Positions 1 through 62,636 of a stretch of 64,000 nt of DNA are shown here, piece after piece. The stretch is from Salpingoeca rosetta (lineage: Eukaryota > Protista > Choanoflagellata): positions 1,897,479-1,961,478 of the forward strand of contig JAWQFM010000001.1 of assembly GCA_033442325.1 (NCBI GenBank). Reading direction: 5' to 3'. The translations under genes were made by a program, and so were the position numbers. Each line of letters begins with the position of its first letter. The first letter of the stretch is position 1. Under the pieces are notes generated by a model. The model was given only the letters and a program-made list of their open reading frames with translations. It was not told where the DNA came from and did not search any database.

Positions 1-200
1 ACGTGGGATGGTTGTTGATAACGACGGAACAAAGCTTGGAGAGATGAGTGTTGAAGAAGCAAGAAAGCTTGCTCACCAGCGGAACCTGGAGTTGCGGCTC
101 GTTCACAAGGCACCCCGCCACTCAAATAAGCCAGCCTTGGATGTATACCGCCTCGTTGACGCCAACCGTGAACGCAAGAAGCAAGAACAGGTGTATGTGT

Positions 201-257
<57 letters not shown>

Positions 258-1127
258 CTCGTTTCTGTACATGTGTGTGTGTGTGTGTACGAACACATGC
301 AAGCGTGCACATTTAGCAGCTGTGGTCGCTGGTCACTGCTATCCCCACATCCTTGTCATCTCTCTGCCCTCACACCTGCTTTGGCATTTGACATTTGGTA
401 GCGTGAGAGGCAGCAGGCAAGGCAGCGACGCGAACGTGCGCGTCAAGAAAAGGAACTGGCAAAGCTGACCAAAGAGGTCCAACTCTCTGGTAAGAAGCCC
501 ACCGGGCTGTGCCCGCCATCACGGCATGCTCTTCCCTTCCCCTCATTGCGCACCCACCCACCCACACACGAACACTTACGCATGCACACACATTCGCGCG
601 TGTTCGTGGCGCCGTGGTTCACGCTTCGTCCGTGCACTGGACCGCGCGCACCCTGCTTGGTTTCATTCGCTCATGTTCCTGCACGGGCGCTCGTGCTGTG
701 CTTGTAACCCAACAGCATGGTGTGGTGAACACGACCTGCAGGTCAAAGTGAAGCAAGCACACAAGTTCCTGAGTAAGGGGTTGCGAGTGCGTATCGTCAT
801 CAAGCATCGGCGTGGCCAGAAACTCGACAGAGACGTACGCTGCACTGTCATGTCTCACTGCTGCTGAGCGTGTTTGCCTTGCTGTACGTGTTGGAAAGAT
901 CATGTGAACCTCATCCCGCGTGCACTGCGAAACCGTGTCTCCTCCACTTACACCTCACACGCTTGTGTGGATTTGCGCTGTGGTCGTGCTGCGTGTACAG
1001 CAACAACAACAAGTGATTCATCAGGTACAGGAGCAGCTGGCAGATGTGGGCATTCCCCACGATGCACGGCAGCAAGGTCGGTCGTGGCGCTGAGCGGCAG
1101 ACTGTGTCCTTCATGCGACACAAGGCG

Positions 1128-6687: not shown

Positions 6688-6729
<42 letters not shown>

Positions 6730-7151
6730 GCGGGTGCGTGTGCGTGTGTGCGTGTGTGTGTGTGTGTGTGTGTTGCGGGTGTGTCATGTGAACATGTGAG
6801 TGTGGTGGGCCAAAGTGTAGATGAGGTATGGTGTTGAATCAAAGAATCAGCACCAGTGCCTTGAACACAAACAAACAGACAGACACACGCATAGACACAC
6901 GCACACACTCGCACGCACACACGTGTACGGGGACAGCACCTGTGATCGAAGGTCTGCGAGCTTGGCGAGGCCTTTCAGGCGCCAGTGTTGGGGCTGAGAC
7001 GATGCGGCTGAGGCAAATGGAAGATGTTGCAGTGCAGTGGCCGTAGTCGCCGCCTCTACTTGGTGTTGGGCTCGAACGATTAAACGCTTGAGCGTTGGCC
7101 GGGACCAGTAGAACCTAATCATCCAGCAGGTACCCGATGGCACGGGAGTGA

Positions 7152-15887: not shown

Positions 15888-21931
<6,044 letters not shown>

Positions 21932-22012: not shown

Positions 22013-23350
22013 TGTGTGTGTGTGTTGCTGTTGCGTTGTTTGTTTTTACCTCACTCTTCTCCCTTGCTTGACTGTCTGCGTTGTTATATTTGGCCACGAC
22101 ATACACAATTTTCCGCCCGTTGCTTGCGAACGTTTCCACCCACCCATCAACAACAACAACAATGCACGCACAACAACTACAGCCATTTTCTCACACACCA
22201 AATACACGAACAGCAAGCAAGCAAGGAACCAAGCGACCAACCAACAACATCTCCTGCCTGCACACGTTCACGCTCTTGGTGGGTATCCCTTCTCTGCCTC
22301 CTTTGCCTCTCCTTTGAACTTCTGTGCTGCCAAGTGGTTTTATTGTGAACCGCTTTGCGTTCCCCTTCCACTTGACTCTTTCTCCTGGTGCCACGAACCA
22401 GCCCATACCGTTCTGCGTGCCCCAAAGTGTTCCCATCATCAACCTTCTGCTCTTGTCGGTTGTGTTTGTTTACGTTTCAGCTTCCGGCTCTCTCTGTCTC
22501 TGTCTCTCTATCTCTGCCTCTGTCTCTCTGTCTCTCCGTCTCTCTGTCTCCCTGTCTCTCTGTCTCTATCTCTCTCGCCCGCCTGGGCATTCGTCCACAT
22601 CCCTCTTGTTCGCACATCACACTTTCCCTCTCGGTCTCATTTACCACACCCTGTCCAAATCTCTCCACCATGGCACCACCGCTCTTGGCACCCATCTCTC
22701 CCTCTGCCTCCTCTTACACAGCGTCTTGTTGCCGGCAACAACAATCGTTCTTGTTGCCTACACCAACGGCGCCACCCACCCCACCACGTCAACTTGCCCC
22801 TCCGCTGTGCTCACCTCCTTTTCATGCGTCCCATCCTTCTCCTCCTCCACCATCACCAGCCACAAGTGCCGCGTCACACTTGCCGACGCCTTCGCCAGCG
22901 TCACCACGCCAGCGCCAAGGAAGCCCGAAGCAGCGCCGCCGCAACAACCGCGGGCGCCGTCACCACAACAACCGTTGCCGCAATCGCAACCGCCGCTGCC
23001 ACAGCAACCGGCAACATCGTTGTCTGCGCCCTGTTGAACCCACAACCACAGCCACAACCACAGCCACCGCCACCCGTACACGCCAACATTCCGCTCACAC
23101 GCACTTCGTTTGTGCCTCTGTTCCCTTTGAACACCAATCCGCCTTGACACCCGCTCTGTTGTCACCCTCAACCACATCTGCACCACCGCACCCCCACTTC
23201 TCATCACCTCCACCACCCCCACCACCCCCACCACCACCGCTCGGCCCGCAAACTTGCTGTTGTGCGCCCAAGGCCGGTTCTTGGGGTGAGACACACGCCA
23301 TCCAAGACGCGCCCGACCCCACGCCGCAGGTAACAACTGAGTGCGTTGCG

Positions 23351-24244
23351 ATGGAGGGTACCCAGTGCCATCATCAGTCTTCCGCTGACACATCATCACT
23401 CCGGACCACATCCGATCCCCAGCATGACAAGGAGTGGGATGCCTCTGCCCCGCGCCGCATGGCGTCCCCGCGCATGGGCGGCCGCAAGACATACGGCAAC
23501 AAGCGCGCGCATGGCAAGCGCAAGCCGCGCCGATGGAAGCCCTACGCCGAGCTGACGTGGGAGGAGCGCCGCGACCTGGTGGAGCGGGAGGCGCAGCAGG
23601 CCGACGCCGCCAACACGGCCGCCCTCTCCCGCTTGCAGAAGAGCACCACAAAGGGCACCGTTGCCTTGCCAATTGCACCGCGCCTGACGGGAGCAACCAT
23701 CATGGACGAGCGCGAGGAGCGCCTCGGCCTCGCTCGGCTGACATCCCAGGACCACGGCGATAGCGAAGACGACGACAGCTACCATCACCAGCAGCAGCAG
23801 CAGCGGCAGCAGCGCGAGGCAAGCAAGTCGCAGCACGCTGACGCGACGCAGATGGACGGCAGCATGGATGCCCACGCGGGCCCGGACATGGCAACGACGC
23901 CAGCAGGCGCAAGGATGGATGAAGGTATGGACACGCGCGCATCGGAAGCAACGGCGGCGATGGATGGGCCGGCGTCGCCCGCGGACTCATCTGAGGAGGA
24001 CGAGTTTGAGGAGGCGTTTGAAGACTGCATGCACGAGGATTACGGCGCCATGTCACGGGAAGAGCTGATTGCCCGCTTGCAGGAAAAGGACGCGCAAGTC
24101 TCCACACTTGAGCGCAGGCTCTCCCAGGCGCAACAAGAACAGCAAGGGCAAGAGCAAGATCAGCAGCAGCAGCAGCAGCAGCATCAACAGCAGCAGCAGC
24201 AGCAGCATCAACAAGGAGGCGCTGTTGTGGGCGAGTCTGCGTAA
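23351..24244 (+). CDS. HEXIM: HEXIM homolog (P-TEFb inhibitor family), intronless
   Basis: Basic region KRAHGKRKPRRWKPYAELTWEERR (HEXIM1 KKKRHWKPYYKLTWEEKK); PIAPRLTGATIMDE (PVAPYNTTQFLMDD); acidic region then FEEAFEDCMHEDYGAMSREELI (FSETYERYHTESLQNMSKQELI) and a coiled coil. Start codon choice is tentative. Confidence 0.88.
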   Translation: MEGTQCHHQSSADTSSLRTTSDPQHDKEWDASAPRRMASPRMGGRKTYGNKRAHGKRKPRRWKPYAELTWEERRDLVEREAQQADAANTAALSRLQKSTTKGTVALPIAPRLTGATIMDEREERLGLARLTSQDHGDSEDDDSYHHQQQQQRQQREASKSQHADATQMDGSMDAHAGPDMATTPAGARMDEGMDTRASEATAAMDGPASPADSSEEDEFEEAFEDCMHEDYGAMSREELIARLQEKDAQVSTLERRLSQAQQEQQGQEQDQQQQQQQHQQQQQQQHQQGGAVVGESA

Positions 24245-25997
24245 GACCAGCACGCCTTGGGTGCTTGATTACATTATGCCTTCTCTCCTCCCTTTTGGAC
24301 CATTCTTGAATCCCTCGTGGGCTTTGTTGTTCTTCTCTCATGTCTATTCTCTCCACCTTTATACACGCACACGGCACACCGTGCACTCAGCGCTCACGCT
24401 TTGACCCACGCGTGGCAATATCTGATGTTGCTCCTTGCATGGCGCGGCACATGCGGAGCAGCAGCTTCAGCAGTGCTCCTTGCAGCCCTGGCCTGCACAG
24501 CCGTCGCGTGGCGACGTGTGGGTGGCAGCGGTGGTCGTGCTTGCACTTGCACGGTTGGGCGAACCGCCGTGCGGGTTGGCTTGACCTCCCCTTGCCCCTT
24601 GTCCACCGCGCAAGCTGCGTGAGTGCAGTTGCTGCTTGTTGTGGGTAAGAAGCCATGAAGCGTGCATGTTGTGAGGCATGTCCTCTCTTGCCGTTGTTGC
24701 GTGTGTCAATGCTTCTTTGCGCTTCGCTGTCAAGCATGCATGCACAGTCATTGCGGGGACAAGCACGGCCCTTGCCCTTGCCCTTGCGGCGTCGCTGGCT
24801 GCCTGACCGGTATTGTTTCCCTGTTGATGGCAAGCAGGTGTTGGTTGTGCCATTGTTCATGTGCGTGTTTGTGTGCGCTTGTGCGTGTTTGTATTTGTTC
24901 GCTTGGTTGGTGCTTAATTTGTATGTTTGTATGATTGCATGTACGTCTACGTGTCTTTTGTTTTGTTTTTGTTCGTTTGTTCCTTTTCGTTTCTTTGTAC
25001 TTGATTTCTTTTCTGTGTTCTCCCACGTGTGCGGCAGGCCTTCTCTCACTCGCTTTCTTACCCCTCCTCACGTTGTCTGTCTCTGTCACCCTTCAACTTT
25101 GTTTCTATCCCTGTATTCTGTATGTTGTCACATCATACATGCACTTCTGTGTGATTGTCCTTGGTGTCCGTGCATGCATGGCAGTTTGCACAGCAGCACG
25201 CAGGTGCGTGCGTGCAGTGGCGTGGCCCCTGGCCCTGTTCACTGCGCCAGCGCAGCGCCAACCACGATCGACCACGCCGCCAATAGACCAACCAACCAGC
25301 CAGTTGCAGGCTGGTGCTGCCGGTTGTTGGGTGTGCGTGGTTTGTATCAGTTTGTCTCCCGCGTTGTTGTCGCTCTTCCTTGTCTGAACAACAGAAATCA
25401 CGCGCAGGTCGCGTGCCGTCATTGTCTCCATGATGGCTTTGTCTCTCACCAATATAATGTCAACAGAACCAACAGAACCAACACAACCAACCACTTGTGA
25501 CTTTGTTGGGTGGAGGGAGGGAGGATGAGACAGATGAGTCTTGCTTGCTTCTTGCTTGCTTGCTTGCTTGCTTGCTTGAGAGGAGCACAAAACCCATGAA
25601 AATTAAAGTTGCATGGAATCCGCTGTGCGTTGGAGTATTGCCACACCCCTTCTTCGCAAAACAACCCCACCCACCTGCGCACTTGCCAGCCGACTGTTGT
25701 AGTTCCTCCCTTCCCGCCCACGACAGACTTGCTCCCATTCAAACAGTCGCTCGCCGACACACGCAGGCAGCCAAGAGCTAGCAGCAGCGCGAACCCTAGC
25801 AGGGAGCATCACCCCCTCCCCCTTTGCGTGTGCGTGCGCGTGTGTGGCGTAGTTTGTCACTGTCTCGTGGGGCAGTCGATTGAGAGAGACTGCGAGCACC
25901 GCTGTGCACGCTGGTGTCTGTCCTGCCGTCTGCTTGTGACGATCTGCGCGCACTGTGAGGACCACTTGGAGGAGACAACACAAGCGCCAGCATCGCC

Positions 25998-37319: not shown

Positions 37320-38511
37320 TTACGACTCATCCTTTGCGCCGTGCTTCAGCACACGCGTGTATTCTCTGTAGTCGAACTTTCCATCGCTGTCAATGGGCGC
37401 TCCTCTGAACATTTCGTCCACTTCCTCGTCTGTGAACCGGTCTCCCATCGTCGTCAGCAACTCACGCAGCCTTTGTGTTGCGTTGTGTTGCGTTGTGTGT
37501 GTGTGTGTGTGTGTGAGTTGCAGGACAGCTCATCGTAGCACAGACGTCACACATGTTGGTGGCACTTGATAATGTTCGCTCGCACACAAGCGAAGTGTAG
37601 TGTAGTGCAGTGCAGCGCAGTGAATGAGTGAGCGGCAGTTGCAAACGAGTGCGCACAAGCAGGGCAGGCGCAAAATGGGGCGGTGACGCTTACTTGTCCT
37701 CATCTATTTTGCCCGTGCCTTCCGGGTCGAAGCATGCGAATGCGTTCTTGATCACGTCTTCTGGATCATACCCGGTCATCTTGTCGCCGAAGAGCGTGAG
37801 GAACATGGTGAAGTTGAGCTTGCTTGGGTTTGGTGCCTCGCTCAGCATCTTCATGATCTGTGCGTCATCAGGCACTTGACCTGTGTGTGTGTGTGTGTTT
37901 GTACATGTGTTGTGTGTGTGTGTGTGTGAGGGGTTAGGTTAATGTGTGAGGCAGCACGTACATGTGTGCACGCTTGTTTGAGAGTTTGTGTTGCGTTGCG
38001 TGTGTTGTTTGTTGTGTGTCGTTTGGTGAGCAGCCCCCAACAAAAAGGCAGAGAATGGACGCACCGAGGGAGGAGTACATCTCCCGCAGATCCTCCTCGT
38101 CGACGACGCCGTTGTGGTTTTGGTCAATCATGCTGAAGGCCTCCTTGAACTCCTGGATCTGTGCCTCGTCAAACATGGCAAACACATTGGACGTGGCCCG
38201 CTGCACGCGGCGCTTCCTTGTACGACGAGCAGCCTGTGCGTGATGCAATGCGTGTGTGTGTGTGTGAGTGAGTTATTGTGCGTGTGTGAGTGTGTGTGTG
38301 TGAGTGTGTGAGAGTTATTGTGTGTGTGTGTGTGTGTGTGTGTGCCGGGTCAAGTGTTTGTTTGTGTGCTCACGCACACGCACACACACACATGTGCCGG
38401 CATGATCTGCGATGCATGCACGATTGATTGGCTGACATGAACATGGTTGTTTGAGTGGCCGTGGCCGGCTACAACACACACACTCTCTCTCGCATACACA
38501 CAACACACCAT
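37320..38511 (-). CDS. Myosin II regulatory light chain (non-muscle type), 4 coding exons
   Basis: ATG at 38511-38509 then intron; exon 38233-38063 [39 protein letters not shown]; exon ~37880-37694 [30 protein letters not shown]; last exon [49 protein letters not shown]. Confidence 0.95.
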
Positions 38512-47362: not shown

Positions 47363-48606
47363 CTACTTGTGGTAGAACTTCTTGTTGATGAGGAAGATGA
47401 GCAGGTTGACGTTGACGGTACAGCGGTCGTCAAAGATCTTCATCGTGTCCACGTTCTCATACTGCTTCTGCAGCAGATCCTGGAACACCAGCTGCTCCTT
47501 GGCGAGCGCCATGCCTGCGCCCTTGATGGTGATGTTGAAGATGCCAACCTCATCCGACGACACGTCAATGTGAAGCCCACGAAGCCTGCACAGTGGGAAG
47601 AGGGGGGGGGGAAGGAAGGCAGCGAAACGGGTGAGCAAGTATAAGCGTGACGCTTGCAGCTCAAGTGCGCCAGCACAGGGATTACAGCACAGGGAGTATC
47701 CAGACAGACAGACGAAACAAACAGACAAACAAACGGACAAACAAACGGACAAACAAACGGACAAACAAACGGACAAACAAACAAACAAACAAACAAACAA
47801 ACAAACAAACAAACAAACAAACAAACAAACAAACAAACAAACAAACAAACAAACAAACAAACAAAGAAGGAGCAATGCTCCAAACGCACTGGAAGTCTGA
47901 GACGCCGGTGACAGAGACGAGGACGCCGCGCTCCTTGAGTTTGTGGGCGTTTGTGCTGTATGTGCCAATCCACTGCCCGCTCTCCGTCTCCTTGCGGCGG
48001 TTCGGGCGGAACCAGAAGCGTTTCCTGTCACGGCAACGGGCCAACATCGCACAGATGGCGTCACGCAGGGTGAGCGGGGATAGATGCAGTCAAAACTCAT
48101 GTAACTCTGCACAAGTCATCAGCACAGACGGGTATTGATGATGCACACACTGGGAGTTGCACTCAACATGCACGACAACGCATCGCAAGCATGGGTGGCG
48201 ACGCACTTTGTGGCTGTGGCTTTGCCCATCTGCTTCATGCACTCCTTAACGTATTGGTCGTAGTAGTCCATGGCCTCAGACTGCTGGCGCTTCTTCACCT
48301 CAAGCTCCTCCAGCGTGTGCTTGAGCTTGGCCAGGTCCTGCTTGCGGTGCTGGCGGTAGATGCGCTGGTTGCGAATGTCCTGGGCAACGGCGTTGAGCAA
48401 GTTCTGGTAGCCCTGCTCCTTCGAGCACAGGCCTTCTTTCTCCAACACCTCCGCATTCGACAAAATCTTCTCCTTCGTCTGCTCCAGAGTCGAGCTGCGC
48501 AGCGCATACGCGTGTATGTATGTATGTATGTATGTATGTATGTATGTATGTATGTATGTATGTATGTATGTATGTATGTATGTATGTATGTATGTATGTA
48601 TGTATG

Positions 48607-48640
<34 letters not shown>

Positions 48641-52700: not shown

Positions 52701-53852
52701 CTCCTTCGTCTCCTTGTTGAAGTAGTAGTCGCGTCCGTCGTCGGTGGCATACTTCTTCCACTTTTTCGCCGCAACCGCGTTGTCTGACTCCTTGCTTGCA
52801 AGCACCGGGGCCAGCGACTTCTGGTACCGCTCCCCGCAGCGGTCCTGCACATTGTCCACTCGCGTATACGGCTCCTGCAGCGTGTGCATGTGCATGCATT
52901 CGTATGTGTGCGTGTGCATGTATTTGTATGTGTAAGCGTGTGTGCGCGTATGCGTGCGAGAGATGCTGTGATTCAGAGTGCACAACGCTTACACGCACAT
53001 ACACACAGATGCAGCCACGAATTACACGCACCTTGAGCTGTGCCAGTGTCTTGTCGGCGTCGCCTTTGCGGATCGCGTCATTCAGCGCAAACAGCGCAGC
53101 CGCATCTGTGCACACGTGCAAATATCAAGCCGGGTAAACATAAGCCGGGACGCAATGCGACAGATAATGACCACTGGCAAGAAACGACTGGACACCATAT
53201 GGTACACACGATGATGCACAAACAAGAGGAGTCAGGACGTACGTTTTGCATTCTCTTCCGCTTCAAAGTTGGCGTCCTTGATCACCTTCTGCACATCATC
53301 ACGGCCGAGCTGTCATTGCCCCATTGTGATGTTTGAAGTGCAAGGAGGAGTAGGTGAGCGGAAGGAAGGCAAACTTGCGCTGTGCCACGGACAGAGCACA
53401 TGGTTTCATTCACAAGTAAAACGCACAACCACACACAAACGCAGACACACAAACTGACCATTTCGCCGCTGACTTCTTCCTTTGCTCGGACGAGTGAGGC
53501 CTGATAGTGCAGTGCACCAGCCTCGTCAACATCCTCAATCGCCAGCACAGGCGCCTGCAGGGCCTCTGTTGAAGGCATACACATGAACATACACGTGTGA
53601 ACGTATGCGCGTGCATGTCAGTGGGACGATCATGTTGCACATTGTGTCGCATGCCAACACGCAACAGCAGTGCTGTAGCCGCAGTTGGTGTGCAAATGCA
53701 TGCCAGAAGAGTAACGAACCAAGTGTTTGCTCTGCTTCGCCTTCGTCGATGCGCTTGTCCAGCTCCTGCAGTGCCGCTTGCACTGAGACATGGAGAGCAG
53801 ACACGCGCAGGTGGTGGAAGATGAGGAAGCACGACAAGAAATCAGCCGGGGG

Positions 53853-58734: not shown

Positions 58735-62243
<3,509 letters not shown>

Positions 62244-62258
62244 GCTAGTCATTGTTTG

Positions 62259-62319
<61 letters not shown>

Positions 62320-62436
62320 GCGTCTTGCTTGGCACTGTGTGCAGGGCTTCTGTCTGTTGTACCCAGGCTTGCAGCTGACTTTTTTTCTTGGAAGGAAGAG
62401 GCAGCTGGTTTGCCCCTCTCAGATACACGCACACAC

Positions 62437-62474
<38 letters not shown>

Positions 62475-62636
62475 CTGGCGTTCTTTGTTGTCGTTTCTGT
62501 TGTTTATGGAGTACCAGACGCATGGCTCCGCCACATCCCACCTTTGGTTACGATTAAAAGCTACGCACTGACGAACACAATTGCCAAACACCCCTGTCTC
62601 AACGCATCCCTAACAAAGGAACATCAAACCCTCCAC

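Follow-up and report, generated by a model that had tools for sequence, protein, structure and literature searches.

In animals, HEXIM proteins hold the elongation kinase P-TEFb in check. Control of P-TEFb by HEXIM and 7SK RNA is usually presented as an animal feature, and in the literature that we searched 7SK is described in animals only (PMC10083321). In human HEXIM1 two basic segments precede the sequence WKPY (PMC10083321), a linker helix spans residues 171-194 (10.1101/2024.10.10.617642), and residues 200-211 occupy the substrate site of CDK9 (PMC10083321, PMC1183248); Thr205 has been called critical for P-TEFb binding (PMC1183248). NMR work on HEXIM1 describes basic and acidic regions that mask the PYNT segment until RNA binds (10.1101/2024.10.10.617642).

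The family is not confined to animals. Chivu et al. (bioRxiv 10.1101/2023.02.19.529146) traced HEXIM to choanoflagellates and other unicellular relatives, noted that the inhibitory Thr, Phe and Tyr residues are often missing from the choanoflagellate orthologues, and tied key residues to the strength of promoter-proximal pausing. The core idea of a non-animal HEXIM lacking functional residues is therefore already known, both from their text and from the PRLT-type sequences in their supplement. Here we describe an open reading frame from Salpingoeca rosetta that belongs with these proteins. It lies at 23351-24244 of the window, the 64-kb stretch of DNA that was analysed, and, judged by its sequence, it is an intact gene for the HEXIM orthologue of this craspedid choanoflagellate.

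Family membership and gene model

The reading frame runs from an ATG at 23351 to a stop codon at 24242-24244 (297 codons plus stop) and encodes a protein of 297 residues, apparently in a single exon. A search of Pfam-A returned a single match, to HEXIM (PF15313), with a score of 33.8 bits (E 4.6e-8; gathering cut-off 29); the match is end to end, covering profile positions 1-142 of 142 and protein residues 62-253. The preliminary description of this DNA had called the product a HEXIM homolog and had named the Pfam profile as a means of checking it. The identification is borne out by that match, above the cut-off over the whole profile, and by a search in the reverse direction. For the latter, a profile was built from four choanoflagellate sequences (the S. 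rosetta protein and three relatives) and compared exhaustively with all 1.84 billion cluster representatives; 87 proteins were found at E <= 0.001, at least 43 of which carry the animal-type motif AP(Y/F)N(T/S)TQF. Those animal-type matches that were checked are strong Pfam HEXIM proteins (144-167 bits). The 167-bit match is a protein of Pleurodeles waltl, whose cluster includes a protein named HEXIM1-like by NCBI. By sequence or by profile none of the solved HEXIM chains was matched, and Foldseek with the AlphaFold2 (AF2) model of the S. rosetta protein matched no solved structure; the latter is expected, because the protein is largely disordered.

Word-index searches recovered three relatives in all. 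The whole protein led to one relative, and residues 40-132 led only to P0001 and P0002. P0001 is Microstomoeca roanoka transcript EP00043_P009508 (38% identity to the S. rosetta protein); P0002 lies on a Logan contig of SRR14727191 and in its conserved part matches Barroeca monosierra EP01147_P008825 at every residue (45% identity to the S. rosetta protein); P0003 is a partial, Choanoeca-like JGI protein (37% identity). With Microstomoeca and Barroeca as the nearest relatives, the earlier attribution to a unicellular holozoan was correct. A tree of 77 family members groups the S. rosetta protein with P0001 and P0002 (SH-aLRT 96), and the gene trees of Chivu et al. show S. rosetta and Microstomoeca as sisters. 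Sequence comparison places the protein in a subclade with Microstomoeca, Barroeca, Monosiga brevicollis and Choanoeca.

Among the four choanoflagellate sequences, identity is concentrated in three near-invariant blocks with unalignable linkers between them. This pattern bears on the suspicion that the resemblance to HEXIM is spurious, produced by low-complexity basic, acidic and Gln-rich sequence. The Pfam score is just 4.8 bits over the cut-off, and a word search with a two-sequence whole-protein profile scored only the 8000 candidates with which it had the most words in common, an outcome attributed to low-complexity words; both would fit such an artefact. However, the elements that match animal HEXIM columns are not repetitive (WKPY..LTWEE, xPxAP..T..(I/L)MD and F..A(F/Y)...), the spacing to the coiled coil agrees column for column with animal HEXIMs as well, and the reciprocal search returns HEXIMs. 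The low-complexity reading, to which we assign next to no probability, is effectively refuted.

The translation start is likely at 23351. The same frame is open back to 22388, some 960 bases 5' of the ATG (22388-23350); this stretch is probably a long noncoding leader. The start was placed at 23351, and the preceding frame taken as leader, because of a contrast in GC3 and because of the context of the ATG, gcgATGG: GC3 is 0.758 in the HEXIM frame but drops to 0.551 before the ATG (22670-23350), where this frame has the lowest GC3 of the three. A start at 22670 was ruled out on the same ground, GC3 in that frame being only 0.55. In the Microstomoeca transcript the predicted reading frame starts at base 810, and about 138 residues of poor conservation precede an internal Met (MESTDF...).

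It might also be supposed that the locus is a decaying or silent relic, its frame open by chance in GC-rich DNA. The protein is missing from every public protein set searched, and the GC-rich DNA of the window yields many long spurious reading frames on both strands. Against this, all 297 codons are intact, GC3 is highest in the coding frame across the reading frame, the start context is good, and the identity is block-wise, at about 80-100% in the functional motifs between species that elsewhere agree at about 40% of positions. We consider a relic very improbable. The Microstomoeca orthologue is derived from a transcriptome, and the gene is therefore expressed in that sister species. The flanking long reading frames at 19380-20798 (+) and 24655-25500 (+) have no Pfam match at E <= 0.01, and the second of them resembles translated low-complexity DNA.

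The gene is apparently unannotated in the S. rosetta genome, since it is absent from the data of Chivu et al., from an exact look-up and from the exhaustive profile search. The peptide WKPYAELTWEERRDL was not found in the 143 supplementary files of Chivu et al., whose HEXIM files hold no S. rosetta entry. Exact look-up of the protein from four possible starts gave no match among about 15 billion proteins, as did look-ups of a 524-residue reading frame, two other reading frames of the window and P0001. Among the 1.84 billion representatives none fits the S. rosetta protein: the top matches were two members of the query itself (372 and 355 bits), followed by a protein at 169 bits. What is new is only this absence of the S. 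rosetta copy from public protein sets.

Domain layout

The preliminary description had listed all HEXIM blocks in their usual order, and each of them was found: the basic patch, WKPYAELTWEE, P-I-A-P, the acidic stretches and the MSREEL helix. Their succession fits the published layout of HEXIM1 (basic region, linker helix, PYNT, acidic region, coiled coil). Coordinates are collected in Table 1.

Table 1. Features of the S. rosetta HEXIM gene; positions are those of the window, and helices and pLDDT values are from the AF2 model.
Feature	Position	Residues	Strand	Remarks
HEXIM coding sequence	23351..24244		+	complete ORF; Pfam PF15313 33.8 bits; GC3; start context gcgATGG
Basic region GRKTYGNKRAHGKRKPRR	23477..23533	43-61	+	net charge +5 to +8 per 15 residues; abuts W62-K-P-Y
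WKPYAELTWEERRDLVERE block and linker helix	23534..23641	62-97	+	WKPYAELTWEE is residues 62-72
Inhibitory-segment counterpart PIAPRLTGATIMDEREERLG	23669..23728	107-126	+	matches PYNTTQFLMDD segment
APRLT	23675-23689	within 107-126	+	
First acidic stretch QDHGDSEDDDS	23747..23779	133-143	+	net charge -6 per 15 residues (131-145)
Linker, Gln/Asp/Met-rich		146-210		unalignable; pLDDT mostly <50 (56-57 over 141-160)
Second acidic block SSEEDEFEEAFEDCMHEDY	23987..24043	213-231	+	net charge -9 (211-230)
C-terminal amphipathic helix MSREELIARLQEKDAQVSTLERRLSQAQQ	24050..24136	234-262	+	AF2 helix; heptad pattern
Gln-rich tail	24137..24220	263-290	+	two runs of seven CAG/CAA codons

The basic region is the putative equivalent of the RNA-binding region of HEXIM, which is also a nuclear localisation signal. 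It fits in composition and position; the exact bipartite KHRR/PS pattern is absent, and with it the KHRR...PS...KKKRH arrangement of animals. In the block that follows, all four choanoflagellate sequences have W70, R73, R74 and L76. The AF2 model has helices at 70-97, 214-227 and 236-289 and is otherwise disordered, save for a short helix at 114-124. The first of these (pLDDT 81-87) is equivalent in position to the linker helix of human HEXIM1; the second lies in the second acidic block, where F223 occupies the position of human Tyr271. There are two acidic stretches downstream of the motif, as is expected of the HEXIM family, in which such regions can pair with the basic region in autoinhibition.

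The third and longest helix goes with MSREEL, with pLDDT of 93-96 over residues 230-260. A heptad pattern extends over 239-260, with L239, L243, K246, V250, L253, L257 and A260 at a and d positions, and the four sequences agree at L239, I240, L243, L253, R256 and L257. [quoted passage not shown] The predicted coiled coil is about one third the length of that in human HEXIM1, which has about 65-100 residues (254-359 segment).

Comparison with animal HEXIM1 and HEXIM2 reveals much in common: a basic region adjoining WKPY..LTWEE, a linker helix, the pattern xPxAP-x-x-T...(L/I)MD, two acidic stretches, an F-x-x-x-aromatic block and, by prediction, a C-terminal coiled coil. The proteins of M. roanoka, B. 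monosierra, M. brevicollis (XP_001745553.1), Choanoeca perplexa and C. flexa are closer still, at 37-45% identity. They share with S. rosetta the order of blocks, the motif AP(R/K/H)LT...(I/L)M(D/E)ERE, EEAF or DDAF at the Tyr271 block and an equally short predicted C-terminal coiled coil. Where S. rosetta differs from them is in its longer Gln/Asp/Met-rich linker and in its poly-Gln tail, which is species-specific, being absent from the aligned choanoflagellate orthologues.

The PYNT position and the direction of its change

The principal departure from animal HEXIM concerns the inhibitory segment. In a MAFFT alignment of the 77 family members returned by the searches, the motif columns are free of gaps, and APRLTGATIMDE aligns with animal APYNTTQFLMDD; residues A109-P-R-L-T-G-A-T-I-M-D-E120 stand under animal A-P-Y-N-T-T-Q-F-L-M-(D/E)-(D/E). 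In S. rosetta P-I-A-P at residues 107-110 is followed by RLTGATIMDE. Where animals have PYNT(TQF), the aligned residues are P-R-L-T-G-A-T, so that Pro and Thr are kept while Tyr, Asn and Phe are replaced. This agrees with the preliminary description, which read PRLT in place of PYNT and drew attention to the downstream Phe; the Phe is gone. In the numbering of human HEXIM1, Pro202, Thr205, Met210 and Asp211 are retained, whereas Tyr203 has become Arg, Asn204 Leu, Phe208 Thr and Tyr271 Phe.

A sequencing error had been named as a circumstance that would undo this reading. It is unlikely, because 99-100% of the sampled 31-mers of 23100-24500 are present in 19 runs from eight studies (sequencing runs of the organism span the years 2013 to 2026 and ten studies) and because APRLT occurs in four other sequences. 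The alignments of Chivu et al. have APRLT in Monosiga, Choanoeca and Barroeca, and APKLT in Microstomoeca. Their supplementary alignment gives the species motifs as APRLTAGVIMEE (M. brevicollis), APRLTKASITEE (C. perplexa), APHLTKASLMDE (C. flexa), APRLTGSDIMDE (B. monosierra) and APKLTATNIMDE (M. roanoka); for Capsaspora, ichthyosporeans, Syssomonas and Picozoa it gives AP(R/K)NT(T/S)Q(F/S/E). The deviation from PYNT is common to the whole subclade, the members of which are still classed as HEXIM or HEXIM-like by Pfam and by Chivu et al. Within the subclade A109, P110, L112, T113 and I117-E122 are invariant.

Consensus sequences from across the family bear on the order of events. The consensus is APYNTTQFLM in animals, APrNTTQf in scattered non-animal sequences and APRLT.a.IMDERE in the S. 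rosetta group; in other choanoflagellates, with the prefix REQPPPAP, the motif is variable and TTQ is often kept. The non-animal HEXIM-like proteins outside the S. rosetta subclade (ichthyosporeans, Capsaspora, Syssomonas, Picozoa and the REQPPPAP choanoflagellates) share WKPY..LTWEE and AP-(R/K)-x-T with it. Unlike it, most of them keep N-T-T-Q-F, that is Asn204 and Phe208, and several keep Tyr at position 271. The published Capsaspora candidate, CAOG_03225, is without the WKPY..LTWEE block. Because non-animal relatives mostly carry AP(R/K)NTTQF, the widespread and probably older state at Tyr203 is Arg or Lys, and Tyr is the animal change. The change of Asn204 to Leu, the loss of Phe208 and the gain of the invariant IMDERE, on the other hand, are derived within one craspedid choanoflagellate subclade. 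At the Tyr271 position animals have F-S-E-T-Y, the subclade has F-E-E-A-F or F-D-D-A-F, and Tyr is kept in other choanoflagellates and in an ichthyosporean-like sequence. As far as the motif is concerned, the suggestion that the S. rosetta system is either ancestral or divergent can accordingly be divided. The first half falls, given AP(R/K)NT(T/S)QF in non-animal relatives; the second stands, on the Leu, the lost Phe and the IMDERE of the subclade.

To ask whether the PRLT-type motif arose once, the motif columns were removed from the alignment, the tree was rebuilt and the seven PRLT-type rows were constrained together. The constrained tree gains 31.6 lnL over the tree from the free search (p-AU 0.975), and a single origin is not rejected.

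Adjoining the PRLT-type subclade in the tree is a small group of four sequences (P0013, P0015, P0016 and P0036; from Logan and other sources, the origin having been checked for P0015). Their motif is AP(L/I/R)IT..A(L/A)MDERE, with the consensus APlITssAlMDERE, and they have the MDERE tail in common with the subclade. The group may mark an intermediate stage through which the motif passed.

A proposed kinase contact and RNA partner

Taken together, the explanation that best accounts for the data is that the gene encodes a HEXIM orthologue of the PRLT subclade, acting as an RNA-gated dimeric binder with a rewired contact to a kinase of the CDK9/cyclin T type; we put its probability at roughly 0.8. 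The protein would be mostly disordered and would dimerise through its short C-terminal coiled coil. A structured RNA would be bound by the basic patch that precedes WKPY; binding would release the patch from the two acidic stretches and expose the conserved APRLT-IMDERE segment, which, together with the coiled coil, would contact the kinase. The contact has probably been rewired in this lineage rather than lost, since the changes at Tyr203, Asn204, Phe208 and Tyr271 leave Pro202 and the critical Thr205 untouched. The altered segment is near-invariant among species that elsewhere are about 40% identical, and this suggests a conserved binding partner rather than decay. Three of the residues tied to inhibition in human HEXIM1 (Tyr203, Phe208 and Tyr271) are changed, which speaks against this explanation, as does the shortness of the coiled coil. 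With the critical Thr205 among the residues kept, altered inhibition of CDK9, as proposed in the preliminary description, is plausible.

The same replacements admit a second interpretation, in which the protein has kept RNA binding and dimerisation but lost its inhibition of CDK9, APRLT-IMDERE having been retargeted to another partner; the gene would then be uninformative on the sequestration of P-TEFb before animals. All four of Tyr203, Asn204, Phe208 and Tyr271 are replaced, Chivu et al. (bioRxiv 10.1101/2023.02.19.529146) tie these residues to pausing strength, and the subclade has a new invariant tail, IMDERE(E/K/A)R(L/T), which is helical by prediction. HEXIM1 is moreover described as a promiscuous binder of double-stranded RNA (PMC1885667). 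Yet Pro202, Thr205, Met210 and Asp211 are in place, including the very Thr described as critical for P-TEFb binding (PMC1183248), and the best-conserved parts of the protein are the acidic/helix block and the coiled coil, which bind cyclin T in human HEXIM1. Retargeting is for these reasons an unlikely account, and a rewired contact with the kinase is preferred.

Less can be said of the partners of such a protein. Chivu et al. list two cyclin T/K-like proteins of S. rosetta, PTSG_07096 and PTSG_12114. Their final CDK9/12/13 files contain no S. rosetta sequence, the only one being a CDK10 in a preliminary CDK set; S. rosetta CDK9, the presumed partner of this HEXIM, was either missing from the proteome used or filtered out. 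LARP7 and MePCE are absent from their supplement.

Rfam scans covered the 64-kb window, split at 22530 and 22570. No 7SK match was obtained there, either at the gathering score or at E <= 1, and no family of any kind matched at the gathering score. The matches at E <= 1, to mir-297, mir-466, MIR2646 and mir-3149, lie far below the gathering scores of these families (62260-62475, 59103-59367, 48572-48640, 52914-53017, 38314-38397 and 6694-6929); we ascribe them to simple repeats of the (CA)n/(GT)n type, which abound in this genome, and do not regard them as RNA genes. A window of 64 kb is near-silent on the presence of 7SK genome-wide, and 7SK diverges so rapidly that homology searches are no proof of its absence (PMC2655684). 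These results speak neither for nor against the undescribed 7SK-like RNA partner that the preliminary description proposed. Nothing in the literature searched links 7SK to Monosiga or Salpingoeca.

A bolder proposal is that S. rosetta and its near relatives possess a pre-animal, RNA-gated brake on P-TEFb, built from the rewired HEXIM with its APRLT-IMDERE segment and a putative 7SK-like Pol III RNA. We regard this as tentative, and doubtful as a whole. Were it true, the origin of 7SK/HEXIM control would be directly testable in S. rosetta, because the organism is genetically manipulable.

The result is a useful annotation and a refinement, and no new kind of system. The direction in which the motif changed is corrected, with Arg as the probable older state and Tyr as the likely animal innovation. 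S. rosetta is probably the main experimental choanoflagellate, and its HEXIM provides a concrete target, which is of some practical value.
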